A DNA stretch of 64,000 nt from Malacoraja senta. Taxonomy: Eukaryota. The stretch is from NCBI GenBank assembly GCA_038087875.1, contig CM075985.1:25544001-25608000 (forward strand), given 5' to 3'. The notes under the pieces were generated by a model. It searched no databases. It saw only the letters and a program-made list of their open reading frames with translations, and was not told where the DNA came from. A program made the position numbers and the translations under genes. Positions 18,661 through 62,810 of this stretch are shown here, one piece after another. The first letter of the stretch is position 1; every line of letters starts with the position of its first letter.

Positions 18661-18771
18661 CTGTAGGAAAGAGAGATGTGGAATTAATAAATTTGTGTTA
18701 CCTTTTCGAGGAGGGCTTTATCTGTATTATAGTTTATAATTTTTGCACCGTTTTATGGAAATATAACTTAC

Positions 18772-18878
18772 TACTACATGAAGGAACACATTGTGTCGCA
18801 TCTTCAGATAGCATCAATCCCTCTGGACAGAAGCAACCTTCAGTAGGTTCAGAGAACATTTCTCCAGTTCTCATAAAA
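18772..18878 (-). CDS. Mucin exon, TIL second half (module 1)
   Basis: FMRTGEMFSEPTEGCFCPEGLMLSEDATQCVPSCS; 107 nt. Confidence 0.93.
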
Positions 18879-19036
18879 CTGTAAATAGATATAGTTATCT
18901 GTTATGCTACTGAATATTATAGCAATGAAGGAATCTAATATTACAAAAAAAAATGATCAATAGTTATATTTCAGACTAGTCAGACAATTAGTATGAAAAC
19001 ATTTTGAATAACAGAAAATATTAACAAAATACTTAC

Positions 19037-19106
19037 TTGTCAGTACAATAATTGTGATTGTTGGTGGCACAGGGTCTATAGATGAAACTATGTGGACAGG
19101 TGTAGC
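19037..19106 (-). CDS. Mucin exon, TIL first half (module 1)
   Basis: YTCPHSFIYRPCATNNHNYCTD; 70 nt. Confidence 0.92.
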
Positions 19107-20306
19107 CTGAAAAGAAATAAATAAATAATGTTAGGCACAAAGACACAAGCCTTAATCCATATATCTACATGTCTTTAGTGCCGGCCTGGGTGATTTAATA
19201 TAAGTTCAGTGTGAAATAAAACGATTACCACAGAATATTGGTGTTACAACTGAAAACACATTGGGGAAACATTTGGATTTGATTATCAGACCTTAATGGA
19301 TGCAGGAGTATCAGGCAATGTCCCATCTCTGTTCATTCAGTTCCACTGATATCCATTAGGCATGGGCAAGGACAATTAGTGGACAGTGGCTGGATTCTCA
19401 TTTATCACAGGTGATCAAAATATATTTCCCCTGATTACTAGATTGAAAGCTGTGCAGCTTTTTTATCACAATAGAGGAGCAAAACAAAAAAAACGTCCAT
19501 TCTTCAGGTAAGTCATTGTCTGATTTACTGCATATGATTGGTCTGGTTGTCACAGATCTCTATTTCCTGTGAGTAAGATTATATATCTCTGCATTAATTC
19601 TCCAACGCTAACATTTTTTTTCATAGTGCTAATGTAACACAGCACAAATAACATAATACTCTTTATTCCTAATTATATAGATTTTTTAGGGCAAATTTTC
19701 CTCCTTATTATAGAAAAATAATGCCGTACTTGCATAACATAGAGGTGAAAGATAGAAAGAAATGCAGTGAGAGGGGGGGGGGGTAGAAACAATACAAGTT
19801 CAATCCTGTATTTTCCTTTCTCCACTTGGCAATTGAAGGATTTGCCAACCACCTCCTAAACTCCTCTAATTTTTGTTGTGTGGATAGGCCATCAGGAGTT
19901 TGCTGTGATCTCGCCACTCTCCATGATTTGGTTTTGGATAAGCCCATAAGATCTCATAAGGCCCCACAGATGATGTGTACCAATTGTATGGGTTAAGCAC
20001 TGAACAGAATTCCTAAGTTTTTCCAAATTTGGAACCCCTTATGGAAAACCAATGTGTCAAGGCAAAATTTTGGCATAAAATGAGTAAGAGGGTGAGAGAA
20101 AATCAAATAATTGTCTATGGAATTCGCTCATGTAGAAATTATTTGGAACCATGCTTATTTTTTTGGCAACTGAAATAATTCTGACAGTTTGTATAGAAAG
20201 AATTGATTTAAACCCACCAGTTCTGAGCTTTGTATATTAGTCTGAAATTATTTTTACATTGATAATTTAATCCTTACGTGTAACTCCACAGTTCCACAAT
20301 ACTCAC

Positions 20307-20482
20307 TGCATGATCCATTTGTAGATTGCCTCCAGTCAACACATAATCCAAGTGCATTACATCTCAAGGCAGCTGCTTCCAGGCTGGAACATTCCTCATT
20401 TGTTGCGTTCCAACAGTTGTCATCCCGACATGCCTCAAAATAGTGAGAAAGTGAATTGAGGCTTCTGCAACTTTTGAATGAA
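20307..20482 (-). CDS. Mucin exon, C8 domain (module 1)
   Basis: SFKSCRSLNSLSHYFEACRDDNCWNATNEECSSLEAAALRCNALGLCVDWRQSTNGSC; 176 nt. Confidence 0.95.
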
Positions 20483-21655
20483 CTGCATAATACAGACATA
20501 AAATAAGTTGTTAGTTACACAAAAGCAAAATCATTTTCTGTTGAATAAAAATCCGCAGTGTTGAAAAATGTATTGTGTGAGGAACTGGTGTAAAATAGAT
20601 CTTGTAGCTATTTTTTCCAAGCATAAGGTTATATTTAAAAGGATTAATGTTTGTTGTAAAAATTATGAACAATTGTAAAATGATTTAAAATCACAAGTAT
20701 TGTTTCATTCGTATCAGGTATAGCTCATTTGTTAATATTCCTACTCAAAAGCCAAATTGGAGTTGCTCAAATCTATCCCAGAAACTCAAGGTTTGAACAG
20801 CTCTTCATTACTGAGGGTTACTGGACTATTGTTGGTGGTTCTTTTTGAATGAAATAGTATGCTATTTCAAATGGAAAAAAATAACGGGATTATACTAGTT
20901 TCAGGGAAGGCTGCTAAATTTTTCCCTATGCCCATATTATTTCTTTATCCAACATCGCAGTGTAAAAACTTGGCTGATAAAGCTTTTAATAGCTAATAGA
21001 GCTTTTAAACTTACAATTTCCCATTGCAAATTCTCCTCAATTACCTACAAAGTAATCTTATGAGTTTTAATATTGGTAGGCTAAATTTGAAATTATTTGG
21101 TATATGTTTATCAAAGGTACTGTAGGGTCATCACCCAACCTTTCAATTACAGCCAATAAACATAACAGATTAAAAACAATTTAAGATTAAACATTTTCTT
21201 TCAAATGCACTGTGATTGGTGCTGTATTAAATATGACAACAGCACAACAGAACAAAAATATTTCATTTTGTTGTGCTTTGCAACAGTAGAGTTTAAGTAA
21301 ATATTTTGCAGATGTACATTGTATCAGTTATAATATTAAAATCTTTAAGTTTTCTTCAGCCTATCTTTTCAGGAATCCTGAGCTATTTTGTATAATTTTC
21401 TTATATGAAACTTTGCCACATGAAAATTGGATGGCTGGCACATTTTGACCTTATCCAAGCAGGACAGTAATGATTGATGGATAATTTATGCAGAAAATCA
21501 GAAACCAGGCCAGTTGATAAAATGTAAAGTTGCCCATCACAAATGAATTTGATGAAGAGTTAAGTTAGAAAATATTTACTATATATTTTAAAACATGAAA
21601 TAAATAATTTTTAAAATAAATCTTTGATTTAAAGGTATGACAAAATATTACATAC

Positions 21656-21866
21656 TTTCCAAATATAGCATTACACATAGGTGTCTCATATTCACATGTT
21701 GGAGGAGGAGTTGGTGGACTGCAAGGCAGATATGTAGGTAGATCTGTGCAATGTATTTTATTTGTATAAGAAGTTTTCCACTCATGAGCTGTTTCAGAAC
21801 AACAGTCAGTAGGCTCTATTTCCCCATTCTTTCTCTTGCAGTCATCGTTGTTTGTAGAAATAGAAC
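21656..21866 (-). CDS. Mucin exon, VWD end and linker (module 1)
   Basis: SISTNNDDCKRKNGEIEPTDCCSETAHEWK...PCSPPTPPPTCEYETPMCNAIFG; 211 nt. Confidence 0.93.
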
Positions 21867-23070
21867 CTATGAAATGGAAATAATTTGCATTAATTAAAAC
21901 AAATCCTTTGACTTATTAAAAAAATTAAGTGATGATTATTTTTGACAAATGAATGATTCAATCATTCAATAAATCAATAATTCAATGATTTCTTGAAACT
22001 TTATTGTCACGTACCGAGGTGCTGTGAAATGCTTTGTTTTGCATGCAACCTTGTGTCGTCACATTTGGCATGAGGCAGCAGGTCTCTCCTCCCCACCGGG
22101 TACCCCTTCTCGGCAGCCCCCTCCCTCCCTACCGGGCCCCCCCCTTTTTTATCCCCCAATCACCCCCCTCCCCCCTCGCCAGGTAGCTCTCGATGGTCCC
22201 CTTGCTTTCCGATGACCTTCCTCACTTTATGGCAGAGCCTTAGGGAACTGATGGCATTTTCATTTGTAAATGTGAAGACGTGCCATATATCCAAATATGC
22301 AAGTCCCAAACTTCCTGACAGATTCTTGACAGTATGCATACATTTTGTGCTCTTACGCTAAGAAATTAAACTGCACTTATGCAATGGAATTTGCTCTTGG
22401 ATCATGCAACAGATTAAAGTTGTGTTGCAGGGAATAAAAAGTTAGCTACCATTCTATAAATTATATATAGATTTGTTATTATAGCAATATTTAGAAGTGC
22501 TTTTTAACTTTTTAAAAATTCAGTCCTTTTTTCATTTTTATAAAAATGTTTTTAGAAGCCAATATTTGACTGTTTCGATAGACAGCAAAGATGGAGGCAT
22601 AGCAATCTCATCTATCAAAAGTTTCTGCAGCAGTTTCATTGATTGGCCTCATGCTAACCCACCATCAGACAAGGTAACATTGGGTCTCACTGATGCAAAA
22701 CCCTTGAATGGCCTTACAGATTCAAACTACCTTGGTGTATCTTGGCGCTAATGGGTTGTTGGCCCTCACTTAGCAAAATGTAAGCTAATATTTTACATCT
22801 TGATCTTTGTTTACAATGGCCATGCATATCTACAAAAATATTAAGGTTTATGAAGCTCTAAGGAATATAGGGAAGAAAGTAAAAACATAAAGTACACCAT
22901 GCTTATGTTAGCTTATACGTATGTGTCATAAATAGGCCATTGTATCACTTCTTTGCTAGAGCAATACAAAAATGAGTGTATTACCCTGTACTCTCACCAA
23001 GCTTAACCAGTTAAAATGGTACTCTCATTGATTATGTTTATATTCTTATTAACAACATCCTATCTCATAC

Positions 23071-23254
23071 CACATTGTCCTTGTAGTTTATCCTTGAAAA
23101 AGAATTCTGATAATTTAATTCTGAACTGTTTTCGGTTTGCTGTAATGACGGTTCGAAGGGCAGGAATATGAACACGTATATGGGAACACCGTTTTGAAAT
23201 GGTAAATCCTTCTGCAGAAAAAGGTAGACTGACAGATTCTCCATTGACTTTCAC
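23071..23254 (-). CDS. Mucin exon, VWD middle (module 1)
   Basis: VKVNGESVSLPFSAEGF...FKDKLQGQC; 184 nt. Confidence 0.95.
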
Positions 23255-23744
23255 CTGCCAAGAATAGATGGAAACATGTTGAAAATCATTTGAAACCTCT
23301 ACATGAGAAAATTATTATCACATTATGTCAAATAAATTATAATTATAACTTTATAGTCCGTATTCTGGAAGAAAATATGACGGCCTCAGTAATACATGGG
23401 GCCAGTTTTTGTTGAGTACAGTTTGGAAGAAGTTTAAGCCAAACTTGCAGCAGCAAAAATAAAGCCCTCTAAGTTTAACTTATGGACCTGATTTTAAAGT
23501 TGCAAGCAGACATTTCTGTAGGAATTCATTATAACTGTTCTAAAATAATGTATGGCTGACAATTTGTCATTTGTGAGTCAGTTTGACTCAGACCTCTGCA
23601 CATGCTCTGCTAAGTGTACAAGTGCATGTCAAGTGGAAGGAAAGGTGCTAGCGGATCTTATCTCTTACTCGGTCAATGGATTTCCGAAAAGGTTGAGCAA
23701 AATAGTGTTATTGTGCTGTAAGGTGAGACTCAATACACTTTGCA

Positions 23745-25865
23745 GTAGAACAGTAGAGTACAGGGACAGACCCTTCAGCTCACAATGACTGGGCTGAACA
23801 TTGTGCCAAGTTAAACTAATCTGCACGTGATCCATATCCCTCTATTGCCTGCATATTCATGTGCCTATCCAAATCCTCTTAAACAACACTAACATATCTG
23901 CCTTCATCACCATCCCTGGCAGCTGGTCTCAGGTACCCATCACTCTCATTGTAATAAAACTTGTCCCGCTAATCTCCTTTAAACTTCACTCCTCTCGTCT
24001 TAAAGCTATGCCCTTAAGTCTTGGAAATTTTCATCCTTAGGGAAAGAAGATTTTGACTGACTACCACATCTACGCCTCTCATAATTTTACATGCTTTAAA
24101 ATCTCTTTTCAGCTCTGTCCCTCCAGAGAAAACAATCCGTTTGTCCAATCTCGCTTTATGGCTAATACCTTCTAATCAAGGCAGCATTTTGGTAAACCTT
24201 TTCAAAGCCTCACGTCCGTCCTGTATGTGCAGACCAGAGATGCACACAATACTCCAAATGCGGTCCAACCAAAATCCTGTAAAACTGTAACATGACTTCA
24301 CAACTCTTAAACTCAGTGCCCCAACTGATGAAGGCAAATATACCGTATGCCTTCTTTACCACTCTATCTACTTGTGTTACAAATTTCAGGAAGCTATGGG
24401 CTTGTACCCCAAGATCTGTTGAGATCTTTCCATTAATTAATATTTTTCCCTTACATGCGACATTCCAAAGTGAAACACTTCACATTTGCTCAGATTAAAC
24501 ACCGTCTGTCATTTCTATGCCCATTTCTGTAGCTGACCAATATTCTGCCGTATACTTTGACTGCCTTCCTCACCGTCCGAGACTCCAGAAACACTGGTGT
24601 CTTCTGCAAACCTGCTCATTAATCTGTCTACATTAACTTTCAAGTCATTTATCTATCCCAGCCTACCAGCCTGTCCTTATAACTCAAACCCAAGTTTATT
24701 GAGGAGTTAACAATGATCAAAGAGGGTAGGGTTATGAATGTTGTCTACATGGATTTTAGTAAAGCCTTTGATAAAGTCTCCCACAATTATTGATTTAGAA
24801 GATTAAGATTAATGTGCTTCATAATGACTGATTTAGAAGATTAAAGTGACTGGCTTCATCTTGACTTGGTTATATGGATTCAGGAATGGCTGATGAATAG
24901 AAGAGAGAGGATTTTGGTAGAAGGACTAGATGTCTTTGACGAGGGAAGATTTGCAGGGATCCTTACTGAGACCTTTGTTGTTTGTGATATATACCAATGA
25001 CTTGGACAAAAATGTCGATGGCTTAGTTTGTAAGTGAGCAGGCAACATCAAGAATGCTGGAGTTGCAAACTGAGGAAAGCTGTCAAAGTATATGGTGGAA
25101 TATCGATCAGCTACAGAAATGGCAGAGAAATAGTAAATGCAGTTTACTGTGAGCATGTGTGAGATGTTGCTCTTTGGGATGTCGAATGTATCGGGGTATA
25201 TGGTTGATGGCAAAAACTTTAACAATATGATGTGCAGAGGGTTCCTGGAGTCCGAGACCATAGCTCGATAGTGTGGCAAAGAAGGCATATGGTGTGCTTG
25301 CCTTCATTGGTAGGGATTTTGAGTGTAAGAGTCAGGAAGTCATGATGCACCTTTATAGGACTATGGTTGGGCCCCATTTGGAGCATTGTGTACAATTCTG
25401 ATTGCGACATTACTTGAAAGTTGTGGATGCTTTTGAGAGGAAGCAGAGGACGTTTACGAGAAAGTTGTGTGGATTGGAGAGTAATAGTTATAAGCAGGGG
25501 TTGGATAAACTTGGATTGTTTTATCTGCAGCATTAGAAGCTGAGGGGAGACCTGAAACAAATATATAAAATTATGACAGGGATAGATGTGGTAGACAGTC
25601 AGAACTTTTAACCCAGTGTGGGAATGCCAAAGACTAGGTGGCATAGTTTTAATGTGAAAGGGGCAAAGATTAAAGAAGATGTGCAGGAGATGTATTTTCA
25701 TATAGAAGGTGCTGGATGACTAGAGTGTGCTGCCAAGGGTGATGTGGAGATAGACATGAAGCTTTTAGATAGTTAAATTGATAAGCAGGGAATGGAGGGG
25801 TATGGATTATGTGCAGAGGATGTTACTTTAGATTGGCATCATGTTCAGCACAGATGTTGTGGGTC
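23745..25865. mobile_element. Two CR1 LINE 3' fragments in opposite orientation (minus ~23745-24690, plus ~24695-25865)
   Basis: VVYMDFSKAFDKVSH motif (plus strand, 24741); CR1 3' tails at both outer ends. Confidence 0.8.
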
Positions 25866-26171
25866 GAATTGTATTTGGATGATTGCAACTTGATGGGGAT
25901 AGGGTAGGGGTGTGATCCAGTTGAGGAATGCGAACGACAGGAAAATAATTAGCAAAACATTGGATGGCTGAAAAGACCAAGACGTCTGGAGAGAAGTGTG
26001 GAAGGAAAATTCAGGTAGCAAATGCAAACAGAAGTTCAGGGAACGTATTTGATGATATTGTTAAGGAGATTTTAGAGTACTGAGGAAAGATTTCAGCGCG
26101 GAGCTTAATCGATTGATGGGATCAGGCAGGTAATATTCATAGTGAATGTACATACATATATTAGTACTTAC

Positions 26172-26401
26172 ATCATTTTGCCATGGTGATACATGTATGG
26201 TGGTTCCATTGTAAATAATTATTATTGATTTCTCACAGGATTTATATGCTGATGGAGGACAATTCTGATTATCAAGGATCACAGAAAAATTGTATGTTGG
26301 GTTAATTTCTTCCACAAGAACGTATGAACAATCTTCAATGAACTTGTAGAATACACCGTCGAAGGTACGATAATGTTTTCTTCCCCATACTTGGCATACA
26401 G
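26172..26401 (-). CDS. Mucin exon, VWD start (module 1)
   Basis: (S)VCQVWGRKHYRTFDGVFYKFIEDCSYVLVEEINPTYNF...VSPWQND; 230 nt. Confidence 0.95.
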
Positions 26402-26526
26402 CTAAAATTTAAAACAGATATTGATTTTTAAATTCCAATTGAAAAAGCAATGGAATTGCTGGTAAATAACATTTTCTATTTGAAATTTAATGAGAAAGTA
26501 AGATGAATAGATAAAAATATAGCTAC

Positions 26527-26698
26527 ATTGACAATCCCATTCTGAACAGCAGCCATCTTCAGTTTCGACTCTGGTAGGTTTTAACCCACTGTAACATTGT
26601 GGCTTTGGAGTTAGTTCACAGGAAACATGTTCAATTTTGTATGTTTCTGCATAAACGCAAGTGTGGGTCGCACAATTTTCCATCCATGTTTCGTTGCA
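26527..26698 (-). CDS. Mucin exon, D4N/VWC-like (module 1)
   Basis: CNETWMENCATHTCVY...CYSGLKPTRVETEDGCCSEWDCQ; 172 nt; donor gtagct. Confidence 0.92.
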
Positions 26699-27524
26699 CT
26701 AGAAAATAATGTAAAACAAATGAATGCATCTTTAAATTTGTAATTTAGTTTGACTGTTTTGAAATAGTATTCATGTAAATGTGTTTGAGGGATATATTTT
26801 TTGCTTGGTTGAATTAAATTGCTCTAATACAACAATTCAAAGAAGTTGAAGTAGTTATGTTTCTGTAAGGTTCTGTTTAATAATGTAATTAGTGGAAACC
26901 AGCATTTTAATATTTCGATTTAAATGAATGTAATAATCAGAGGGCCAATTTTCAAACCCATAAACATAATCTATTGTAATCCTGTTTTTATTTGTGTCCA
27001 CTATTGGATGAATGGGGCATAAAAGTGAATTCATCAAATGCAATCCATTGAATAGCACCATTATTATAATTGATGATGTGTGGGATCAAAAACTGACGAG
27101 TGATTTCCAGAACAAATGTGCCTGGCCCACGGTGAACCTTTGGAATGTCTTCCTTTGGAGCTGTGGAGGAGCATTATTGACTAAAACAGAGTTCATATTA
27201 TTAATTTAGCCTTTGGTGTCTTTTGGCAACCAAATCAAAATAAGCACAATTAATAATTTAGGTTTTATATTTATTTCAACACACTCATGAATTACATATA
27301 AGGAAGCAATGGACCATGCTTTGCTCCAAATATCATTGCAGAAAAGAAGATTACTTGTATCTTTAGTCACTAAAGGGTATGTTGATAAAATCTTTGTTGG
27401 CTCTGGCCAAACCAAAAGACAAGAACTTTGAGAAGTTGTATAGAGATTTTGTCAGCAATTGAGCTAATACAGGTAGATGATTCAGATCATAAATAGCAGA
27501 CTAACTTTGAAGCTAGCAGTTTTT

Positions 27525-27835
27525 AGTTTAGTTTAGTTTAGTGATAGCTCGGAAACAGGCCCTTTGGCCCACTGGGTCTGCACCGACCAGCGATCCCCGC
27601 ATATTAACAATATCCTACACCCATTAGGCACAATTTTTACTTTTACCGAGCCAATTAATCTGCAAACCTATACGTCTTTGGAGTGTGGGAGGAAACTGAA
27701 GATCTCGGAGAAAGCCCATGCAGGTCATGGGGAGAACGTGTAAACTCCGTACTGACAGCACCCGTAGTCTGGATCGAACCCGGGTCTTTGGCGCTGGATT
27801 TGCTGTAAGGCAGCAACTCTACCGCTGCGCCACCT
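27525..27835 (-). mobile_element. tRNA-derived SINE (V-SINE/HE1-like)
   Basis: Minus-strand head GGTGGCGCAGCGGTAGAGTTGCTGCCTTACAGC..GGTTCGATCC; (CTAAA)n tail. Confidence 0.85.
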
Positions 27836-27974
27836 TGTCTAAAAACAGGAATGCTGTGGTATGAAATTTAGTTCAGTGATAAGTAGCATGCTGAGATACA
27901 AACAGTTCTAGAGAGCATGAGACCATTTAGCTTTTTCATTAAGCTAATTCATTTAGTTTTTTCACCCTGGTTAT

Positions 27975-28300
27975 TCCATCTTTTTCCCTCTCCTGTCAGG
28001 CAGAAGATAGAATAGCTTGAAAGCATGTACCACCAGGCTCAGGACAAGCTTCTTCCCCTCTGTTATCAGACTACTGAACGGTCCTCCCATAAGATAGGGT
28101 GTAGTCCTGATCTTCCAACCTATCTCGTAGTGGACATTGGACCTTTTACTTTGGAACTGTATTGCTACAAAGCTGTACAACTATATGCTGCCCTCTGATA
28201 ATTTTCCCTTTGGTGTGCCTGTGTATAGCTTGATTGTAATCATATGTGATATGATCTGATTTAATTGAATAGCATGCAAGCAAAAGCTTTTCACCGTATC
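27975..28300 (+). mobile_element. Rex1/Babar-like LINE 3' fragment
   Basis: Degenerate LSGRR..SLKACTTRLRTSFFPSVIRLLN. Confidence 0.6.
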
Positions 28301-28431
28301 ATGGATCAAGATTAGGCAACATATTAGCATATTTTTGTTTAACCTTGTGAAGTATCATTTGAATAACATAAGAATAATATTTGTAGTGTAAGCTTACGAA
28401 AAATCAAAATTTCATAATGAAATATATTTAC

Positions 28432-28805
28432 CTTTCGTGGTGGATTTGAATCACAGTAACATTCTTCTGGTGGAATGGAGGTGGAGACAGTTGTAGTCAT
28501 GGTTGTCACTTCGGTTGGCTCACAGCAAACTCTGATCTCATAGTCATTACAAATCTGTCCCGCTGCATCCTCAGAAACGGTACAAATCAGCCCTATGTCT
28601 TTATCACACACCACTATATCTGCTGATAAACTTGAAGGCCAATAAGTATCATTGGCGAGTTGACACTGAATGTTACTGATCTTATCAGAAGGATAGGAAC
28701 ATATTCCTTCACGTATTGGAGCCAGCAATTCCTTATCATTTGGGCTCTGTGCTGATGGTGTATTATCATTATACCAGGAAGACCATACACCAGAACAGTG
28801 GGCCT
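28432..28805 (-). CDS. Mucin exon, CysD (Mucin2_WxxW) domain plus short PTS
   Basis: EAHCSGVWSSWYNDNTP...IQCQ...VVCDKDIGLIC...ICNDYEIRVCCEP...ECYCDSNPPRK; 374 nt; phase 1-0. Confidence 0.95.
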
Positions 28806-49759: not shown

Positions 49760-50567
49760 CTAGTGAAAGAAAATAATTATATATTCAAACAAGACAGCCA
49801 TCAGGAAGGAATCAGTTAGAAAACCATCTACAGGAATTAATCAGCTGGCACATTTTATTAAAACATTTTCCATGGTTTAATAACATGTTCTTCCTTCACA
49901 TTAACTTCATCTTAGAAAAAAAGTGAGAGGGCGTACTATGCTGCTAAATTTTTTATCTCTATTATCTATTGGCATATCAATATTTTGCTGCCATCTCAAA
50001 TAATCCTGTGCTCTTGACACATCGATTGCGGATATCCCTGCGCATCGAAACACGTCTTCCATACAATTTATGTTCTTCTTTATGCCATTATTACTAACAG
50101 TATAGTTGCACGATTCATGACAATAATGTAAGCGAAGGTAAAAGAATGGAGCCACAGAGCTGATGTTAGAAATGTTGCCCCATTGTCCAAAGATTAGCTA
50201 ATGTTTACTAAAAGTAGCAATGTTACAAAATTTTGAGATTTTAAAAATCAAGTCTGTAATTTATCCCATCAGATAAAGCATAAAAAGACATTTAATTTGA
50301 CACCTAATTCACTTTCATATCTTCAGTATTAAAAAAGTTATGGCCATTTTCATACTTGTAAATTAGCATCTTGTTCCCTATTGCTTTTCCATTGACTCAA
50401 CACAAAAGCTGTGATCGAGGACAGTCAAAAGCCCATAACTTTCTTAAAAATTAAGAGAACTGAAAGAAATGTTCAGTTATTATAGATTGAGCCACAGAGC
50501 TGATGTTAGAAATGTTGACCCATTATCTAAAGATTAGCCAATGTTTACTGTAAGTGTTTTGACTCAC

Positions 50568-50630
50568 CTGTTGTGGAACTGGTGGTGGACTCAGTTGTAC
50601 CAGTTGTCGAAGATGTTGTTGGTGTTGTTA
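50568..50630 (-). CDS. Mucin PTS micro-exon (63 nt)
   Basis: (I)TTPTTSSTTGTTESTTSSTT; cag/gtgagt. Confidence 0.88.
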
Positions 50631-51089
50631 CTGGAGAGAGAGTACAAACATGTTTACGATTTTAATTGCAAGAGCTGCAGCCACAAAGCGCTCAGCTAAG
50701 GAAGCCAAGAGGAATTGATATGCAGTTTTGAATCTTCAACAGGAATTCCTCAACTGGAACATTTGATGAAAACGATTTGGAGTTGACATGGTAGAATGTG
50801 TGTATGTGTGTGTGTCTCATTTATCATATTATATATTATGATTACATATTCTGTTGTACTGTAGCAAGTAAGAATTTCATTGTTCTATCTGGGACATATG
50901 ACAATAAAACACTCTTGACTCTTGACTGCTACAGTTCTTTGTCTTTGTAATTCAACAGATGAGTATTTCAGCGTCAATTGACCCATTGTCTCATTTCAGT
51001 GCCGCCGTTGACAATCCTTTGCTCTTAATGCACCAATTGTAGATTTCATGGAAGTTCAACCGTGTTTTCCAAAGACTGCATGGTCTACT

Positions 51090-51259
51090 NNNNNNNNNNN
51101 NNNNNNNNNNNNNNNNNNNNNNNNNNNNNNNNNNNNNNNNNNNNNNNNNNNNNNNNNNNNNNNNNNNNNNNNNNNNNNNNNNNNNNNNNNNNNNNNNNNN
51201 NNNNNNNNNNNNNNNNNNNNNNNNNNNNNNNNNNNNNNNNNNNNNNNNNNNNNNNNNNN
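51090..51259. other. Assembly gap
   Basis: Run of N; hides the 5' end of Helitron copy 2. Confidence 1.
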
Positions 51260-52523
51260 AACTCTCATCTTGCTTGTTTGTTTGTTTGTAAGCGTGCGTG
51301 CATGTTCTGGAAACTCCGCCAAAACAGTACAAGATAGAGCTACAAGTTTGGCCCACCTTACTCACCATTGTCCTGCGGTGTGCACTAGCCAAGTTTAGTT
51401 CTGATTAATGTTATATTTTACAAGTTATTGACATTTTTAACGTTTAAAAAATCACTTTTCCGCTTGCCCTGCCCATCAGCCGTGTTCGACATCACAATAA
51501 TGTCACAATGGGATCTTTAAACTTTAAAAATTAACTTTTCCACTTGCGTTGCCCATCAGCTGCATGACTGCGCGTGCTCAGTGGGCCAGGAATCCGTGCG
51601 TGTGGATTTAAAAATAACTGAAAGTCTCCCCGCGCGTCAGCAGTGGGCCCGGTATCCGCGTGTGCGGGATTTGAAATAACCGCGGTGCTGAGGCTGAGGC
51701 TAGGTCTGTGCGTGGCGGCGCTGCTGCTCTGGCCCCTCGGGGAGGGAGAGGAGCGAGACCCAGGTCAAGGACTGGGCCGCAGCCTCGGCCTCCGCCTCCC
51801 CCTCCCCCTCCCCCTGCTGCAAGCTGCTCGGCCCGTCCCCCCGTCAGCCCCCACCTTGAGTACAACTATATCGATGATGTGGTGGAGAAAACAGAGCCGG
51901 CGGTGATTTACATCGAGATCCTAGGGAGGTGAGGAGGGAGAAGAGGGGGTAGGGATGGAGAGGTAGGGAATGGGCGATAGAGGGAGAGGAGGGCAGTGTG
52001 GAAGGTGAGGAGGGTGATTGGGAGGGGTGGGATAGGAGGGAGAGGAGAGGGGAAAGAAGAGAGATGGTGAAGAGGAGGGGGAGGGAGTGGTGGGGAAGAG
52101 GGGGAATGGAAGAGAATAGGGGTAGGAAGAGGGATGGTGAGGTAATGGAGGAGGGGAGGGGGAAGAGAGAGGAGGGGAGGGGGGTGAGTGGAGGAAGCAG
52201 AGGAGATTTGTTTGAATGTGGGGAGAGGGACGATGATGGAGGAGGGGAATAGGGGACTGAAGAGGGAGAGTGAGATGCGTTCACATTGATCTTATATTTT
52301 ACATTATTGACATTTAAAACTTTTAAAATGTCGCAGTCGCGGCCTCCCACTTGCCGGCTGCGCCGGCGCAGTTGGGTGAGGGTTGCCGTGACTCGCGTCA
52401 CAAAGGGGATCTCTGGCGTCAAAACGGGAACATGTCAGCCACGTCTGTGCAGTTGGGGGCTATGGGTGAGTGGTGGAATATTGTGTCGGGGGAACGGGCT
52501 CAACGGGTCCACACTTGGTCTAG
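51260..52523 (+). mobile_element. Non-autonomous Helitron carrying an HTRA2 fragment (copy 2; 5' end in the gap)
   Basis: Ends gggctcaacgggtccacacttggtCTAG|T; collinear with 33625-34912. Confidence 0.85.
51685..51928 (+). pseudogene. HTRA2: Captured HTRA2 exon-1 fragment, frameshifted, donor retained
   Basis: [11 protein letters not shown]...LQAARPVPP / [28 protein letters not shown] followed by gtgagg. Confidence 0.85.
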
Positions 52524-53146
52524 TTATTACAAATAGTGTGTGATGTGTTTGCACACAATCAGCATTTGTGTTCCATTTGTCCAAATGTACCACAACCTCA
52601 CTTGTGCAAAATATGCTGATTCTAATCATGCTTTAACTTGGTATTGCTGAATATCCGAAGAAACTGAGAAACAGAAGATAACAGTTGGACACAAAGGGCT
52701 GAACAAGGAACTGCAAATGCTGGGTTACACAAAATGACCCAAAGTGCTGAAGAAATCAGCACGTCAGGCAGCATCACTGGAGAAAGTGGATAGGTGATGT
52801 TGCAGGTCAGGAATCTTCTACAGCTTGGAGAAGGAGCCGATCCTAAATAATATATATCCATGTTCTCCCTAGAGGCAGCCTGACTCGCTGATTACCTCAG
52901 CACTTTGTGTCATTTTGTGTCAGCTAGCATTTGCGGTTCCTTGCCTCTGTTACTCCACAATTCCTAAGCTTTTTGAAGATTACTTTATAACTTGGTATAA
53001 ATGGATTGAGCCAAACATTGAAATCTTGACATATATATTTTCACCTTGTACATCAATAATGTAAGCAAAGAAGCAAGAAGTGGAAAGAGCTGCTGTTAGA
53101 AATGTTGACCGTGTTGTTTTTACTCTTTCGTGGAAATATAACTTAC

Positions 53147-53253
53147 TACTACATGAAGGAACACATTGTGACGCATCTTCAGATAGCATCAATCCCTCTG
53201 GACAGAAGCAACCTTCAGTAGGTTCAGAGAACACTTCTCCAGTTCTCATAAAA
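53147..53253 (-). CDS. Mucin exon, TIL second half (module 2)
   Basis: FMRTGEVFSEPTEGCFCPEGLMLSEDASQCVPSCS; 107 nt; ends in phase 1. Confidence 0.9.
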
Positions 53254-53411
53254 CTGTAAATACATATCGTTATCTGTTATGCTACTCAATATTATAGCAA
53301 CGAAGGACATCTAATATTACAAAAAAAATTATCAATACTTATATTTCAAACTAGGAAGACAATTAGTATGAAAACATTTTGAATAACAGAAAATATTATC
53401 AAAATACTTAC

Positions 53412-53481
53412 TTGTCTGTACAATAATTGTGATTGTTGGTGGCACAGGGTCTATAAATGAAACCATTTGGACAGGTGTAGC
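53412..53481 (-). CDS. Mucin exon, TIL first half (module 2)
   Basis: YTCPNGFIYRPCATNNHNYCTD; 70 nt. Confidence 0.9.
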
Positions 53482-54690
53482 CTGAAAAGAAAGAAAGAAA
53501 TAATGTTAGGCACAAAGACACAAATCTTAATCCAGATATCTACATGTCTGTAGTGCCGGCCTGGGTGATTTAATATAAGTTCAGTGTGAAATAACACAAT
53601 TACCACAGAATATTGGTGTTACAACTGAAAAAACATTGGGGATACATTTGGATTTGATTATCAGACCTTAATGGATGCAGGAGTATCAGGCAATGTCCCA
53701 TCTCTGTTCATTCAGTTCCACTGATATCCATTAGGCATGGGCAAGGACAATTAGTGGACAGTGGCTGGATTCTCATTTATCACAGGTGATCAAAATAAAT
53801 TTCCCTGATTACTGGATTCAAAGCTGTGCAGCTTTTTTTTTATCACACTAGAGGTGCAAAACAAAAAAAACTTCCATTCTTCAGGCAAGTCATTGTCTGA
53901 TTTATTGCTTATGATTGGTCTGGTTGTCACAGATCTCTATTTCCTGTAAGTAAGATTATATATCTCGGCATTAACTCTCCAACGCTAACATTTTTTTTTC
54001 ATAGTGTTAATGTAACACAGCACAAATAACATAATACTCTTTATTCCTAATTATAAAGATTTATTAGGGCAAATTTTCTTCCTTACTATAGAAAAATAAT
54101 GCCGTACTTGCTTAACATAGAGGTGAAAGATAGAAAGAAATGCAGTGAGAGGGGGAGGTAGAAACAATACAAGTTCAATCCTGTATTTTCCTCTCTCCAC
54201 TTGGCAATTGAAGGATTTGCCAACCACCTCCTTAATTCCTCAGATTTTTGTTGTGTGGATAGGCCATCAGGAGTTTGCTGTGATCTTGCCACTCTCCATT
54301 ATTTGGTTTTGGATACGCCCATAAGATCTCATAAGGCCCCACAGGTGGTGTGTACCAAATGTATGGGTTAAGCACTGAACTGAATTCCTACGTTTTCCAA
54401 ATTTGGAACGCATTATGGAAAACCAAAGTGTCAAGGCAAAATTTTGGCATAAAATGAGGAAGAGGGTGAGAGAAAATCAAATAATTGTCTATGGAATTCG
54501 CTCATGTAGAAATAATAGTAAATTATTTGGAACCATGCTTATTTTTTTGGCAACTGAAATAATTCTGACAATTTGTAAAGAAAGAATTGATTTAAACCCA
54601 CCAGTTCTGAACTTTGTATATTAGTCTGAAATTATTTTTACATTGATAATTTAATCCTTAAGTGTAACTCCACAGTTCCACAATACTCAC

Positions 54691-54866
54691 TGCATGATCC
54701 ATTTGTAGATTGCCTCCAGTCAACACATAATCCAAGTGCATTACATCTCAAGGCAGCTGCTTCCAGGCTGGAACATTCTTCATTTGTTGCGTTCCAACAG
54801 TTGTCATCCCGACATGCCTCGAAATAGTGAGAAAGTGAATTGAGGCTTCTGCAACTTTTGAATGAA
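54691..54866 (-). CDS. Mucin exon, C8 (module 2)
   Basis: SFKSCRSLNSLSHYFEACRDDNC...LCVDWRQSTNGSC; 176 nt. Confidence 0.92.
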
Positions 54867-56061
54867 CTGTATAATATAGACATAAAATAAGTTGTTAGTT
54901 ACACAAAAGCAAAATCATTTTCTGTTGAATAAAAATCCGCAGTGATGAAAAATGTATTGTGTGAGGAACTGGTGTAAAATAGATCTTGTGCCTTTTTTCA
55001 AGCACAAGGTTATATTTAAAAGGATTAATGTTTGTTGTAAAAATTCTGAACAAATGTAAAATGATTTAAAATCACAAGTATTGTTTCATTTGTTTCAGGT
55101 ATAGCTCATTTGTTAATATTCCTACTCAAAAGCCAAATTGGAGTTACTCAAATCTATCCCAGAAATTCAAGGTTTGAACTGCTCTTCGTTACTGAGGATT
55201 ACTGGGCTTTGTCGGTGGTACTTTTTGAATGAGATGAAATATTATGTTCATTTAAATGGAAAAAAAATAATGGGAATGATACTAGTTTCAGGGAAGGCTG
55301 CTACATTCTCCCCTATGTCCATATTATTTCTTTATCCAACATCGCAGTGTAAAACTTGGCTGATAAAGCTTTTAATAGCTAATAGAGCTTTTAAACTTAC
55401 AATTTCCCATTGCGAATTCTCATCAATTACCTACAAAGGAATCTTCTGAGTTTTAATAATGGTAGGCTAAATTTGAAATAATTTGGTATATGTTTATCAA
55501 AGGTACTGTAGGGTCATCACCCAACCTTTCAATTACAGCCAATTAAAAACACGTAACCTTTCAATTACAGCCAATTAAAAACAAATTAAGATTTTGATTA
55601 AACATTTTCTTTCAAATGCATTGTGACTGGTGCTGGATTAAATATGACAACAGCACAACAGAACAAAAATATTTCATTTTGTTGTGCTTTGCAACAGTAA
55701 AGCTTAAGTAAATATTTTGCAGATGAACTTTGTATCAGTTATAATATTAAAGTTTTCTTCAGCCTATCTTTTCAGGAATCCTGAGCCATTTTGTATAATT
55801 TTCTTATAGGAAACATTGCCACACGAAAATTGGGATGGCTGGCACATTTTGACCTTATCCAAGCAGGACAGTAATGATTGATGGATAATTTATGCAGAAA
55901 ATCAGAAACCAGGCCAGTTGATAAAATGTAAAGTTGCCCATCACAAATGAATTTGATGAAGAGTTAAGTTAGAAAATATTTGCTATATATTTTAAAACAT
56001 GAAATAAGTAATTTTAAAAATAAATCTTTGATGTCAAGGTATTACATAAAATATTACATAC

Positions 56062-56272
56062 TTTCCGAATATAGCTTCACACATAGGCGTCTCATATTCA
56101 CATGTTGGAGGAGTAGTTGGTGGACTGCAAGGCAGATATGTAGGTAGATCTGTGCAATGTATTTTATTTGTATAAGACGTTTTCCACTCATGAGCTGTTT
56201 CAGAACAACAGTCAGTGGGCTCTATTTCCCCATTCTTTCTCTTGCAGTCATCGTTGTTTGTAGAAATAGAAC
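56062..56272 (-). CDS. Mucin exon, VWD end and linker (module 2)
   Basis: SISTNNDDCKRKNGE...PCSPPTTPPTCEYETPMCEAIFG; 211 nt. Confidence 0.92.
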
Positions 56273-57484
56273 CTATGAAATGGAAATAATTTGCATTAAT
56301 TAAAACAAATCCTTTGACATTAAAAAAATTAAGTGTTTTTTTTGACAAATGAATGAATTAATCATTCAATAAATCAATAATTCAATGATTTATTGAAACG
56401 TTGTCACATCTACCGAGGTGCTGTGAAATGCTTTGTTTTGCATGCAACCTTGTGTCGTCACATTTTGGCATGAGGCAGCGGGTCTCCCCTCCCCACCGGG
56501 TACCCCTTCTCGGCAGCACCCTCCCTCCCTGCCGGGTCCCCCCTTTTTTATCCCCCATTACCCCCCTCCCCCCACCGCCAGGTAGCTCTCAATGGTCCCC
56601 TTGCTTTCCGATGACCTTCCTCGCTCTATGGCAGAGCCTTAGTGAACTGATGGCATTTACATTTGTAAATGTGAAGAAATGTGCCATATATCCAAATATG
56701 CAAGTCCCAAACTTCTTGACAGATTCTTGACTGTATGCATACATTTTGTGCTCTTACACTAAGAAATTAAACTGCACTTATGCTATGGAATTTGCTCTTT
56801 GATCATGCAACAGATTAAAGTTGTGTTGCAGGGAAGAAAAAGTTAGCTACCATTCTTAAATTATCAATGTATAGATTTGTTACTTTAGCAATATTTTGAA
56901 GTGCTTTTTGAACTTTTTAAAAATTCAGTCCTTTTTTCATTTTTAGAAAAATGTTTTTAGATTCCAATATTTGACTGTTTCGATAGACAGCAAAGATGGA
57001 CGCATAGCAATCTCATCTATCTGCAGCAGTTTCATCAATTTGCCTCGTCCTGACCCACCATAAGACAAGGTAACATTGGGTCTCACTGATCAGGTCTGAA
57101 AAATCCTTGAATGGCCTTACAGATTCAAACTATCTTGGTGCATCTTGGCGCCAATGACGGTTGTTGGCTCTCACTTAGCAAAATGTAAGCTAATATTTTA
57201 CATCTTGATCTTTGTTTACAATGGCCATGCAGGCCATATGTACAAAAATATCAAGGTTTATGAAGCTCTAAGGAAGGAATATAGGGAAAAAAGTAAAAAC
57301 ATAGAGTACACCATGTTTATGTTAGCTTATACGTATGTGTCATAAATAGGCCATTGTGTCACTTCTTTGCTAGAGCAATACAAAAATGAGTGCATTACCC
57401 TGTACTCTCGCCAAGCTTAACCAGTTAAAATGGTACTCTCATTGATTATGTTTATATTCTTATTAACAACATCCGATCTCATAC

Positions 57485-57668
57485 CACATTGTCCTTGTAG
57501 TTTATCCTTGAAAAAGAATTCTGATAATTTAATTCTGAACTGTTTTCGGTTTGCTGTAATGACGGTTCGAAGGGCAGGAATATGAACACGTATATGGGAA
57601 CACCGTTTTGAAATGGTAAATCCTTCTGCAGAAAAAGGTAGACTGACAGATTCTCCATTGACTTTCAC
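57485..57668 (-). CDS. Mucin exon, VWD middle (module 2)
   Basis: VKVNGESVSLPF...LQGQC; 184 nt. Confidence 0.92.
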
Positions 57669-58157
57669 CTGCCAAGAATAGATGGAAACATGTTGAAAAT
57701 CATTTGAAACCTCTACATGAGAAAATTATTATCACATTATGTCAAATAAATTATAATTATAACTTTATAGTCAGTATTCTGGAAGAAAATATGATGGCCT
57801 CAGTTATACATGGGGCCAGTTTTTGTTGAGTATAGTTTGGAAGAAGTTTAAGACAAACTTACTGCAGCAAAAATAAAACCCTCTAAGTTTAACTTATGGA
57901 CCTGATTTTAAAGTTGCAAGCAGACATTTCTGTAGGAATCCATTATAACTGTTCTTAAAAAATGAATGGCTGACAATTTGTCATTTGTGAGTCAGTTTGA
58001 CTCAGACCTCTGCACATGCTCTGCTAAGTGTACAAGTGCATGTCAAGTGGAAGGAAAGGTGCTAGCAGATCTTATCTCTTACTCAGTCAATGGACTTCCT
58101 AAAAGGTTGAGCAAAATAGTGTTGTTGTGCTGTAAGGAGGGACTCGATACACTTTGC

Positions 58158-60305
58158 AGTAGAACAGTAGAGTACAGGGACAGACCCTTCAGCTCACAAT
58201 GTCTGGGCTGAACATTGTGCCAAGTTAAACTAATCTGCACGTGATCCATATCCCTCTATTGCCTGCATATTCATGTGCCTATCCAAAGCCTCTTAAACAA
58301 CACTAACGTATCTGCCTTCATCACCATCCCTGGCAGCTGGTCTCAGGTACCCATCACTCTCATTGTAATAAAACTTGTCCCGCACATCTCCTTTAAACTT
58401 CAAACCTCTCGTCTTAAAGCTATGCCCTTAAGCCTTAAAATTTTCATCCTTAGGGAAAAAAGATTATGACTGTCTACCACATATACGCCTGTCATAATTT
58501 TACATGCTTTAAGATCTCTTTTCAGCTCTGTCCCTCCAGAGAAAACAATCTGTTTGTCCAACCTCGCTTTATGGCAAATACCTTCTAATCAAGGCAGCAT
58601 TTTGGTAAACCTCTTCAAAGCCTCACGTCCTTCCTCTATGTGCAGACCAGAGTTGCACACAATACTCCAAATGCAGTATAACCAAAATCCTGTAAAGTTG
58701 TAACATGACTTCACAACTCTTAAACTCAGTGCCCCAACTGATGAAGGCAAGAATACCGTATGCCTTCTTTACCACTCTATCTACTTGTGTTACCAATTTC
58801 AGGGATCTATGGGCTTGGACCCCAAGATCCCATGTATATCAATGCTGTTAAGATCTTTCCATTAATTAATATTTTTCCCTTACATGTGACATTCCAAAGT
58901 GCAACACTTCACATTTGCTCAGATTAAACACCATCTGTCATTTCTCTGCCCATTTCTGCAGCTGACCTATATCCTGCCGTATACTTTGACAGCCTTCCTC
59001 ACCGTCCGAGTCTCCAGAAACGCTGGTGTCGTCTGCAAACTTACTCATTAATCTGTCTACATTAACTTTCAAATCATTTATCTATCCCAGCCTAAGAGCC
59101 TGTCCTTATAACTCAAACCCAAGTTTTATGAGGAGGTAACAATGATCGAAGAGGGTAGGGTTATGAATGTTGTCTACATGGATTTTAGTAAAGCCTTTGA
59201 TAAAGTCTCCCACAATTATTGATTTAGAAGATTAAGATTAATGGGCTTCATAATGGTTGATTTAGAAGATTAAGATGACTGGCTTCATCTTGACTTGGTT
59301 ATATGGATTCAGAAATGGCATACGAATAGAAGAGAGAGGATTTTGGTAAAAGGACATAATTCAGGCTAGATGTCTTTGACTAGTGAAGATTTGCAGGGAT
59401 CCTTACTGAGACCTGTGTTGTTTGTGATATAAACAAATGACTTGGACATAGATGTCGATGGCTTAGTTTGTAAGTGAGCAGGCAACATCAAGAATGCTGG
59501 AGTTGCAAACTGTGAGGAAAGCTGTCAAAGTATATGGTGGAATATCAATCAGCTACAGAAATGGACAGAGAAATTGTAATTGCAGTTTAATCTCAGCATG
59601 TGTAAGATGTTGCTCTTTGGATGTCGAATGTATGGCGGTATATGGTTGATGGCAAAACCTTTAACAATATGATGTGCAGAGGGATCCTGGATTCCGAGAC
59701 CATAGCTCGAAAGTGTGGCAAAGAAGGCATATGGTGTGCTTGCCTTCATTGGTAGGGAATTTGAGTGTAAGAGTCAGGAAGTCATGATGCACCTTTATAG
59801 GACGTTGGTTAGGCCCCATTTGGAGCATTGTGTACAATTCTGATTGCGACATTACTTGAAAGATGTGGATGCTTTTGAGAGGAAGCAGAGGACTATTACC
59901 ATAAAGTTGTGCGGATTGGAGAATATTAGTTATAAACAGAGGTTGGATAAACTTGGATTGTTTTCTCTGCAGCATTAGAAGCTGAGGGGAGATCTGAAAC
60001 AAATATATAAAATTATGACAGGGATAGATGTGGTAGACAGTCAGAACTTTTAACCCAGTGTGGGAATGCCAAAGACTAGGTGGCATAGTTTTAATGTGAA
60101 AGGGGCAAAGATTAAAGAAGATGTGCAGGAGATGTATTTTCATATAGAAGGTGCTGGATGACTAGAATGTGCTGCCAAGGGTGGTGTGGTGAAAGATAAG
60201 AAGCTTTTAGATAGTTAAATTGATCAGCAGGGAATGGAGGGGTACGGATTATGTGCAGAGGAGGTTACTTTAGCTTGGCATCATGTTCAGCACAGATGTT
60301 ATGGG
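58158..60305. mobile_element. Duplicated opposite-orientation CR1 pair
   Basis: Paralog of 23745-25865. Confidence 0.8.
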
Positions 60306-60612
60306 TCGAATTGTATTTGGATGATTGCAAATTGATGGGGATAGGGTGGGGGTGTGATCCAGTTGACGGAATGCAGACGAGTGGAAAATAATTAGCAAAA
60401 CAATGGATGGCTGAAAAGACCAAGACGTCTGGAGAAGTCTGGAGGGAAAATTCAGGTCGGAAATACAAACAGAAGTTCAGGGAACGTATTTGATGATATT
60501 GTTAAGGAGATTTGAGAGTACTCAGGAAAAATTTCAGCGCGGAGCTTAAACGATTGATGGGATCAGGCAGGTAATATTCATAGTGAATGTACATACATAT
60601 ATTAGTACTTAC

Positions 60613-60842
60613 ATCATTTTGCCATGGTGATACATGTATGGTGGTTCCATTGTAAATAATAATTATTGATTTCTCACAGGATTTATATGCTGATGGAGGA
60701 CAATTCTGATTATCAAGGATCACAGAAAAATTGTATGTTGGGTTAATTTCTTCCACAAGAACGTATGAACAATCTTCAATGAACTTGTAGAATACACCGT
60801 TGAAGGTACGATAATGTTTTCTTCCCCATACTTGGCATTCAG
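60613..60842 (-). CDS. Mucin exon, VWD start (module 2)
   Basis: (S)ECQVWGRKHYRTFNGVFYKFIEDCSYVL...WQND; 230 nt. Confidence 0.92.
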
Positions 60843-60967
60843 CTAAAATTTAAAACAGATATTGATTTTTAGAATCCAATTGAAAAAGCAATGGAATTGC
60901 TTGTAATTAAATTTTTCTATTTGAAATTTAATGAGAAAGTAAGATGAATAGTTAAAAACATAGTTAC

Positions 60968-61139
60968 ATTGACAATCCCATTCTGAACAGCAGCCATCTT
61001 CAGTTTCGACTCTGGTAGGTTTTAACCCACTGTAACATTGTGGCTTTGGAGTTAGTTCACAGGAAACATGTTCAATTTTGTATGTTTCTGCATAAACGCA
61101 AGTGTGGGTCGCACAATTTTCAATCCATGTTTCGTTGCA
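60968..61139 (-). CDS. Mucin exon, D4N/VWC-like (module 2)
   Basis: CNETWIENCATHTC...GCCSEWDCQ; 172 nt; donor gtaact. Confidence 0.92.
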
Positions 61140-61962
61140 CTAGAAAATAATGTAAAACAAATGAATGCATCTTTAAATTTGTAATTTAGTTTGACTGTTT
61201 TGAAATAGTATTCATGTAAATGTGTTTGAGGGATATATTTTTTTGATTGGTTGAATTAAATTGCTCTAATACAACAATTCAAAGAAGTTGAAGTAGTTAT
61301 GTTTCTGTAAGGTTCTGTTTAATAATGTAATTAGTGGAAACCAGCATTTTAATATTTCGATTTAAATGAATGTAATAATCAGAGGGCCGATTTTCAGACC
61401 CATAAACATAATCTATTATAATCCTGTTTTTATTTGTGTCCACTATTGGATGAATGGGACATAAAAGTGAATTCATCAAATGCAATCCATTGAATAGCAC
61501 CATTATGATAACTGATGATGTGTGGGATCAAAAACTGACGAGTGATTTCTAGAACAAATGTGCCTGGCCCACGGTGAACCTTTGGATTGTCTTCCTTTGG
61601 AGCTGTGGAGGAGCATTATTGACTAAAACGGAGTTCATATTATTAATTTAGCCTTTGGTGTCTTTTGGCAACCAAATCAAAATAATCACAATTAATAATT
61701 TAGTTGTTATATTTATTTCAACACACTCATGAATTACATATAAGGAAGCAATGGACCATGCTTTGTTCCAAATATAATTGCAGAAAAGAAGATTACTTGT
61801 ATCTTTAGTCACTAAAAGGTATGTTGATAAAATCTTTGTTGGTTCTGGCCAAACCAAAAGACAAGAACTTTGAAAAGTTGTACAGAGGTTTTGTCAGCAA
61901 TTGAGCTAATACAGGCAGATGATTCAGATCATAAATAGCAGACTAACTTTGAAGCTAGCAGT

Positions 61963-62265
61963 TTTTAGTTTAGTTTAGTGATACAGCGCGGAAACAGGCC
62001 ATTTGGCCCACTGGGTCCGCACTGACCAGCGATCCCCGCATATTAACAATATCCTACACCCATTAGGGACAATTTTTACTTTTACCGAGCCAATTAACCT
62101 GCAAACCTTTGGAGTGTGGGAGGAAGCTGAAGATCTCGGAGAAAACCCATGCAGGTCACGGGGAGAACGTGTAAACTCCGTACTGAGAGCACCCGTAGTC
62201 TGGATCGAACCCGGGTCTTTGGCGCTGCATTTGCTGTAAGGCAGGAACTCTACTGCTGTGCCACC
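61963..62265 (-). mobile_element. tRNA-derived SINE (paralog of the one at 27525)
   Basis: Same head, core and tail. Confidence 0.82.
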
Positions 62266-62810
62266 TTGTCTAAAAACAGGAATGCTATGGTATGAAATTT
62301 AGTTCAGTGATAAGTAGCATGTTGAGATACAAACAGTTCTAGAGAGCATGAGACCATTTAGTATTTTCATTTAGCTAATTCATTTAGTTTTTTCACCCTG
62401 GTCATTCCATCTTTTTCCCTCTCCTGTCAGGCAGAAGATACAATAGCTTGAAAGCATGTACCACCAGGCTCAGGACAAGTTTCTTCCCCTCTGTTATCAG
62501 ACTACTGAACAGTCCTCCCATAAGATAGGGTGTAGTCCTGATCTTCCAACCTATCTCGTTGTGGACATTGGACCTTTTACTTTGGAACTGTATTGCTACA
62601 AAGCTGTACAACTATATGCTGCCCTCTGATAATTTTCCCTTTGCACTACCTGGTGTGCCTGTGTATAGCTTGATTGTAGTCATATGTTATATGGTCTGAT
62701 TTAATTGAATAGCATGCAAGCAAAAGCTTTTCACCATATCATGGATCAAGATTAGGCAACATATTAGCATATTTTTGTTTTACCTTGTGAAGAATCATTT
62801 GAACAACTTA

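Follow-up and report, generated by a model that had tools for sequence, protein, structure and literature searches.

A gel-forming mucin gene with a duplicated D4 block

The DNA analysed here is a stretch of 64,000 nucleotides (nt) from the skate Malacoraja senta (contig CM075985.1, positions 25,544,001 to 25,608,000), which we call the window throughout. The window is predicted to hold the 3′ half of a gel-forming mucin gene of the MUC2/MUC5 type, and within this gene the seven exons that encode the D4 assembly are present twice. Over the whole 64-kb window, mucin-like open frames are confined to the minus strand, and the order from high to low coordinates is one copy of the D4 block (copy B), a 2.5-kb intron with an assembly gap, 23 micro-exons of the PTS region, a CysD exon, the other copy of the D4 block (copy A) and the C-terminal exons (Table 1). 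The PTS domain, CysD domain, D4 and C-terminal cystine knot expected of a gel-forming mucin of this type are all present, and the CysD exon in Table 1 is the only one found in the window. The D1-D2-D'D3 region, which is present in the ortholog from Leucoraja erinacea, would correspond here to sequence past window position 64000.

The seven-exon D4 block is genuinely duplicated within the gene, both copies being complete, in order and on the same strand. A reading of this DNA from its letters alone (below, the sequence-only reading) had claimed that the seven exons occur twice together with their introns, and self-BLAST indeed aligned the two segments over 9737 columns at an offset of 34375, the edges of the duplicated segment being sharp on both sides in a MAFFT alignment. 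When we searched for AG/GT-bounded stretches of the predicted lengths in an open frame, exactly one chain of exons was found in copy B. Exon lengths are identical in the two copies (172, 230, 184, 211, 176, 70 and 107 nt), there are no stops and no indels, and 14 out of 14 splice sites are retained. The exons differ by 19 substitutions over 1150 nt, and the residue differences are exactly the nine that had been listed (M6I, V59E, D72N, P249T, N261E, H330N, S331G, M355V and T376S). The introns, also as described from the letters alone, carry many indels (45 indel events between the copies) in addition to 4.73% substitutions.

The modules D4N, VWD, C8 and TIL occur in the order expected of a D4 assembly. 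In a search of PDB, the sole matches of B exon 1 were to the D4N/VWCN module in C-terminal structures of MUC2 (7qcl, 7qcu and 7qcn; E 7e-10; residues 15-70 of 7qcl), and A exon 1 differs from B exon 1 by one residue. Pfam scored VWD at 62 bits in exon 2 and 16.6 bits in exon 3, and C8 at 36 bits in exon 5; the score for TIL in exon 7 (20.7 bits) is under the cut-off for a lone exon. The 383-amino-acid (aa) module aligns over its full length with the one D4 that about 90 MUC2/5-like proteins have at the C-terminus (150-790 bits), versus 20-80 bits when compared with D1-D3. At the position of the cleavable GDPH of MUC2 both copies have GRKH, and both have Glu at the position of the extra interchain cysteine of MUC2 D4N, Cys4379 (PMC10082768).

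The two copies have different surroundings. Copy A adjoins the C-terminal region, being directly upstream of the exon at 18660-18629 and of the VWC and CTCK exons, whereas copy B is not followed by any VWC or CTCK exon, as had been noticed before, and PTS micro-exons follow it instead. D4 of human MUC2, MUC5AC, MUC5B and VWF (D4N/VWCN-VWD4-C8-4-TIL4) consists of the same four modules in the same order, but it is found once, directly before VWC/CTCK, while here the second D4 would precede PTS. The premise that canonical MUC2/5 proteins have a single D4 is true for all but one of the approximately 90 relatives retrieved, and an evolutionary survey of gel-forming mucins describes a single 'fourth VWD' (PMC4948705). 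Among these relatives, several D4-type assemblies are seen only in KAM4618062.1 of the frog Discoglossus pictus (MUC5-like, 4939 aa), which has D1-D3, two CysD and six D4N-VWD-C8-TIL modules in tandem, separated by VWC-like segments, not by PTS. Counted with its VWC segment, each module is about 475 aa long, and each has GDPH. This model is automatic and unreviewed, has no CTCK and comes from a different lineage; it may represent either a genuine mucin with several D4 or tandem copies that were merged in the model.

In FCGBP, zonadhesin and otogelin, too, internal duplication has produced many VWD-C8-TIL assemblies. FCGBP gives a good score with the VWD exon of the window; the D4N exon, however, matches no FCGBP structure in the PDB search. 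Furthermore, FCGBP-like proteins have contiguous VWD-C8-TIL repeats, without PTS rods and without CTCK, whereas PTS, CysD and CTCK are all present in the window.

Table 1. Coordinates of the features of the mucin gene in the window
Feature	Coordinates	Strand	Remark
Copy B of the 9.7-kb segment (extra copy)	53131..62811	-	94.2% identical to copy A
B exon 1, 172 nt, starts in phase 0, D4N/VWCN module	60968..61139	-	
B exon 2, 230 nt, N-terminal half of VWD	60613..60842	-	Pfam VWD E 9e-17 and PDB matches; carries the GRKH
B exon 3, 184 nt, C-terminal half of VWD	57485..57668	-	identical to A exon 3
B exon 4, 211 nt, last part of VWD, first part of C8	56062..56272	-	7 differences from A
B exon 5, 176 nt, C8	54691..54866	-	Pfam C8 E 8e-9; borders backed by related-species spliced contig
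B exon 6, 70 nt, start of TIL	53412..53481	-	related-species spliced contig
B exon 7, 107 nt, TIL, ends in phase 1, GTAAGT donor	53147..53253	-	related-species spliced contig
Copy A of the segment (in-context ortholog)	18756..28371	-	collinear with L. erinacea (L001) on both sides
A exon 1	26698-26527	-	
A exon 2	26401-26172	-	
A exon 3	23254-23071	-	
A exon 4	21866-21656	-	
A exon 5	20482-20307	-	
A exon 6	19106-19037	-	
A exon 7	18878-18772	-	
Transposon-like multi-copy element, end adjoining left edge of copy B	62802..63090	.	TTAAG site, intact in A and L. erinacea
Right-hand junction of copy B: D4 intron 7 (~+20 nt) fused to X intron (~+37 nt after micro-exon donor)	53097..53131	-	alignments
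X-B, intron sequence paralogous to X-A, contains assembly gap	50807..53097	-	orthologous to L001 69694-71528
Assembly gap (N) between B exon 7 and first micro-exon	51090..51259	.	flanks collinear with paralog and ortholog
PTS micro-exons, n=23, 36-63 nt each, all phase 1-1, 1182 nt total (394 aa)	31504..50630	-	
First PTS micro-exon after copy B, phase 1-1	50630-50568	-	
X-A, intron of the PTS region	32804-35489	-	
CysD exon, 374 nt, phase 1 to 0	28432..28805	-	Pfam Mucin2_WxxW E 4.5e-14
C-terminal exons after copy A	10456..18660	-	
Exon after A exon 7, 32 nt, phase 1 to 0	18660-18629	-	
VWC pieces	near 14659-14549 and 12335	-	
CTCK exons, then stop	11353-11225 and 10620-10456	-	Pfam Cys_knot match at 10456-10653

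Origin and edges of copy B

The closest protein is the mucin-2-like ortholog of L. erinacea (XP_055509503-XP_055509517; locus L001, CM054028.1:13.00-13.10 Mb), with about 88% amino-acid identity. Like the window, it has a PTS region of phase-1 micro-exons, a CysD exon, a seven-exon D4, a short VWC and CTCK, preceded in its case by D1-D3, and its introns are 90-94% identical to, and collinear with, those of copy A. It differs, however, in having one CysD, one D4, one X intron and no copy B. The isoforms listed for its cluster of 16 members form a single size class of 2234-2320 aa, which fits a one-D4 model. Given that the ortholog has a single D4 and that both A and B map to one interval of it (L001 75439-86595), copy B arose after the split from Leucoraja.

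To see copy B in independent DNA, contigs from public sequencing runs were compared with positions 49600-55599; runs X5 and X6 are DNA runs of two samples. Contigs of both runs are identical to copy B over stretches that include up to 66 positions at which A and B differ, and one contig of X6 (53088-53233) crosses the chimeric junction 3′ of B exon 7. Word depth on copy B was 41-54 in X5 and 8-11 in X6, compared with 41 and 10, respectively, on the non-duplicated flank 49650-50108. The depth on B, the test that the sequence-only reading had suggested for a false duplication, therefore equals that of the unique flank and is not half of it.

Some letters in these contigs are of the A type. At 53171, the site of T376S, where the reference letter gives Ser in copy B, the A-type letter, which is also the ancestral one, is present even in a contig anchored in B-specific flank; this points either to a polymorphism or to an error in the consensus. 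At 53948-54079, 54998-55005 and 55414-55480, DNA contigs placed on B show runs of A-type letters, eight of which are A-derived states as judged by the outgroup. Either these are contigs of the A locus placed on B, or they are A-to-B gene-conversion tracts segregating at B.

At its right-hand edge, copy B passes from D4 intron 7 (111 nt long in copy A) directly into the sequence of an intron of the PTS region, which we call X. X is present twice in the window, the two instances (X-A and X-B) being 93% identical, and once in L. erinacea. One segment is common to X-A (33625-34912), X-B (51303-52500) and the ortholog (L001 70374-71528), and therefore predates the species split. The assembly gap in X-B is flanked by sequences (50977-51089 and 51303-51618) that are collinear with 33506-33618 and 33666-33980 and with L001 around 71528-71604, and no exon was found at the matching position of either the paralogous intron or the L. 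erinacea ortholog. Since the flanks are collinear and the relatives have no exon there, the gap has no bearing on the reading frame, unless it hides an exon. Among the joints listed, those across 50.9-52.7 kb have sides of about 21 nt that lie within repeats, and are uninformative.

At the left-hand edge, homology to copy A and to L. erinacea breaks off no more than about 10 nt from where a repeated element terminates. In L. erinacea the copy of this element has about 3.4 kb between inverted ends of about 70 nt, and the element is possibly a cut-and-paste DNA transposon of this size; subterminal CACGAGT-type hairpins and TTAA-containing flanks are seen both here (62802-63090) and in L. erinacea (positions 398-700 and 3732-3799 of locus L002, CM054028.1:13.17-13.23 Mb). 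The other terminal repeat was not found in the 1.2 kb of the window left before 64000. Because homology stops at the terminus of the element and the other terminus is not in the remaining window, the left edge of B is more likely to be a later transposon insertion than the duplication breakpoint. On this side, the actual breakpoint of the duplication and a CysD exon, which in copy A is at a distance of only 61 nt, may be situated past 64000. Between 62812 and 64000 we found no coding-like stretch, and an Rfam scan of the upstream flank gave only chance microRNA-like hairpins.

Two simple routes to this arrangement were rejected. Copying of the segment and its insertion into the X intron predicts a micro-exon and 36 nt of X just upstream of 62811, but the transposon end is found there. 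A two-unit tandem duplication of X, micro-exons, CysD and D4 accounts for the junction, but leaves unexplained why X occurs on each side of the array, as X-B and as X-A.

Constraint and age of copy B

Substitutions were polarised with L. erinacea as the outgroup. The pairwise ratio of nonsynonymous to synonymous divergence (dN/dS) between A and B is 0.29, but the changes are distributed differently along the two lineages: 2 nonsynonymous and 5 synonymous in A, 8 nonsynonymous and 2 synonymous in B. The introns accumulated 169 (A) and 188 (B) changes over 8254 sites. At the intron rate of B, 26 substitutions would be expected in its exons, and 10 are observed (P about 0.0003-0.0016); for nonsynonymous changes the values are 20.7 expected and 8 observed (P 0.0013), and for exon indels about 3.3 expected, from 24 B-specific intron indel events, and none observed. 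These counts indicate that copy B has been under constraint, though weaker constraint than copy A, and with four times as many amino-acid changes. Comparison of dN/dS and intron identity, which the sequence-only reading had put forward as a check, gave a mixed answer: B changed less than neutral sequence, but its constraint is weaker than the pairwise ratio suggests.

Divergence between A and B is 3.8-3.9% in introns within 100 nt of exons, 4.1-5.1% in distal introns and 1.65% in exons. Synonymous sites have diverged by 0.039, nearly as much as introns (0.047). This, together with the small difference between exon-proximal and distal introns, speaks against gene conversion as the reason why the exons are so similar. 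By clock-like scaling of the intron branch counts, the age of the duplication would be about 70% of that of the species split.

Between the two skates, the D4 exons of copy A evolve almost neutrally (compared with L001 77109-86562, dN is 0.070 and dS 0.090, a ratio of 0.78). D4 exon 3 differs by 12% between the skates, with its cysteines kept.

Possible use of copy B in the transcript and the protein

The D4 block of 1150 nt runs from phase 0 to phase 1. As had been predicted, the phase-1 end of B exon 7 fits the first micro-exon, and concatenation of the D4 exons of B, the 23 micro-exons, CysD and the D4 exons of A gives 1285 codons without a stop. At the 5′ side, B exon 1 starts in phase 0 whereas the micro-exons end in phase 1, so copy B is usable only behind an exon of the CysD type (phase 1 to 0); a phase-1 exon spliced directly to B exon 1 leads to a stop after 6 codons. 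The proposal that the module could be skipped in frame as a whole holds for CysD plus D4 (1524 nt), which is frame-neutral, but not for the D4 block alone.

We favour, with a probability of about 0.6, the reading that the window belongs to one gene encoding one protein with two D4 assemblies. It is suggested by the constraint on B, by the phase fit at the 3′ side of B, and by the transposon, which would explain why the upstream partner is missing. According to this reading, a segment reaching about 20 nt beyond the last D4 exon would have been duplicated within the gene once the lineage had separated from Leucoraja, the end of the segment being joined to an intron of the PTS region. The resulting order would be D4 (B), 23 PTS micro-exons (394 aa), CysD, D4 (A), a short VWC region and CTCK. 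Copy B would be spliced into the same mRNA, using its own CysD-type exon beyond position 64000, and insertion of the transposon into the intron between CysD and D4N would have moved the two apart. The encoded mucin would then contain a non-cleaving D4 in its interior (GRKH in place of GDPH, and no extra D4N cysteine of the MUC2 type) with glycosylated rods on both sides, and this internal D4 could act as an extra globular node of self-association, akin to the terminal D4 pair and to CysD domains. The sequence-only reading had gone further and described one gene with a (CysD-D4-PTS)n architecture. Two D4 assemblies split by PTS and one CysD are indeed there, but the repeat was over-generalised: the window shows no more than two D4 and one CysD, and the ortholog a single D4 and a single CysD.

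Several observations speak against a two-D4 protein. The window shows, upstream of B, no exon ending in phase 0, whether of the CysD type or any other. Among the public runs none was found of RNA from this species, and these runs gave no transcript support for B; the joint 53147-50630 is not among the joints listed for the DNA runs or for related-species RNA, and protein searches returned only orthologs and paralogs from other species, with no model from this one. A 1646-nt spliced contig from run X1, which is of a related species, connects exon 5 to exon 6 and exon 6 to exon 7 where predicted, to within one base (an ambiguity where both positions fit), but it has the ancestral letter at all four checkable sites diagnostic of A or B, and is therefore assignable to neither. 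The site of T376S in B exon 7 has the A-type letter in both DNA runs. Finally, B is relaxed relative to A (8:2 versus 2:5 nonsynonymous to synonymous changes; Fisher P 0.058), and a recent loss of function of copy B may be compatible with this relaxation.

The main rival explanation is that copy B is a real duplicate outside the mature protein, its exons lying in what works as an intron and being skipped, or included only in transcripts with premature stops, while the young copy decays. The dependence of B exon 1 on a phase-0 partner and the excess of amino-acid changes in B agree with such a fate, as do the public runs, which gave no transcript support for B, and the ortholog with its 16 isoforms works with a single D4. 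However, the exons of B changed far less than its introns (P about 0.001), and after about 2.3% neutral divergence B has no indels, stops or lost splice sites; unused exons that keep intact strong splice sites would be costly, and the left edge resembles a transposon insertion and not a breakpoint. We consider this explanation possible but rather doubtful. It is improbable that copy B instead forms the 3′ terminus of a separate, truncated upstream mucin gene or transcript, one that is complete after D4, which would make two genes of the locus. Partial paralogs do exist in skates, as L. erinacea has a second gene on the same chromosome, 77 kb off, whose model ends in PTS. Yet copy B is followed by no terminal exon, VWC or CTCK, and there are no N-terminal exons between B and the PTS array. 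Read-through past the exon 7 donor would add 55 unrelated residues before a stop. The donor itself has the consensus GTAAGT, and the acceptor that follows it is undamaged. CTCK is the dimerisation domain of gel-forming mucins, and a product lacking it would be without means to dimerise in this way.

Least probable by far is that the second copy is an artefact of assembly, formed from allelic haplotypes or from a collapsed repeat that was wrongly expanded. An assembly gap does lie 2 kb from copy B, and the region is rich in repeats, but 4.7% substitution divergence with 45 indels is far beyond the allelic range, the flanks of the copies are sharp and dissimilar at both ends, and short-read contigs of two samples reproduce B-specific sequence and the junction, at the depth of unique flank. 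Mis-joined haplotypes, one outcome that the earlier reading had named as fatal to it, are ruled out by this divergence, by the different flanks and by the independent contigs over B and the junction.

A broader proposal can be put at even odds: that this vertebrate gel-forming mucin carries a second, internal D4 between glycosylated rods, created by duplication of a frame-neutral cassette of CysD plus D4 (phase 1 to phase 1, 1524 nt) within the micro-exon PTS array, D4 being a movable 'bead' that can be added or spliced out to alter the cross-linking of mucus. The uniform intron phase of micro-exon PTS arrays lets whole cysteine-rich modules insert without breaking the frame. The role of D4 in mucins is poorly understood, and D4 has so far been treated as fixed, single and C-terminal. 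An intact D4 in the middle of a rod would mean that D4 is able to work away from the C-terminal dimer, and the two close skates would provide a natural comparison of one-D4 and two-D4 mucins. If copy B is unused, it would merely be a young internal duplicate of little interest.

The mucin locus has a history of large duplications. The second gene of L. erinacea (XP_055509560, 1341 aa, at L002) is 93% identical to the ortholog over its N-terminal 1211 residues, and its model ends inside PTS. Another assembly gap in the window (608 N, 1027-1634) lies downstream of the 3′ end of the gene and has no relation to the D4 duplication. Within the PTS region, 35982-49620 consists of three tandem 4.6-kb units with six micro-exons each, which are 96-98% identical to one another and younger than the D4 duplication; the tandem PTS array is orthologous to L001 at about 50.7-69.6 kb.

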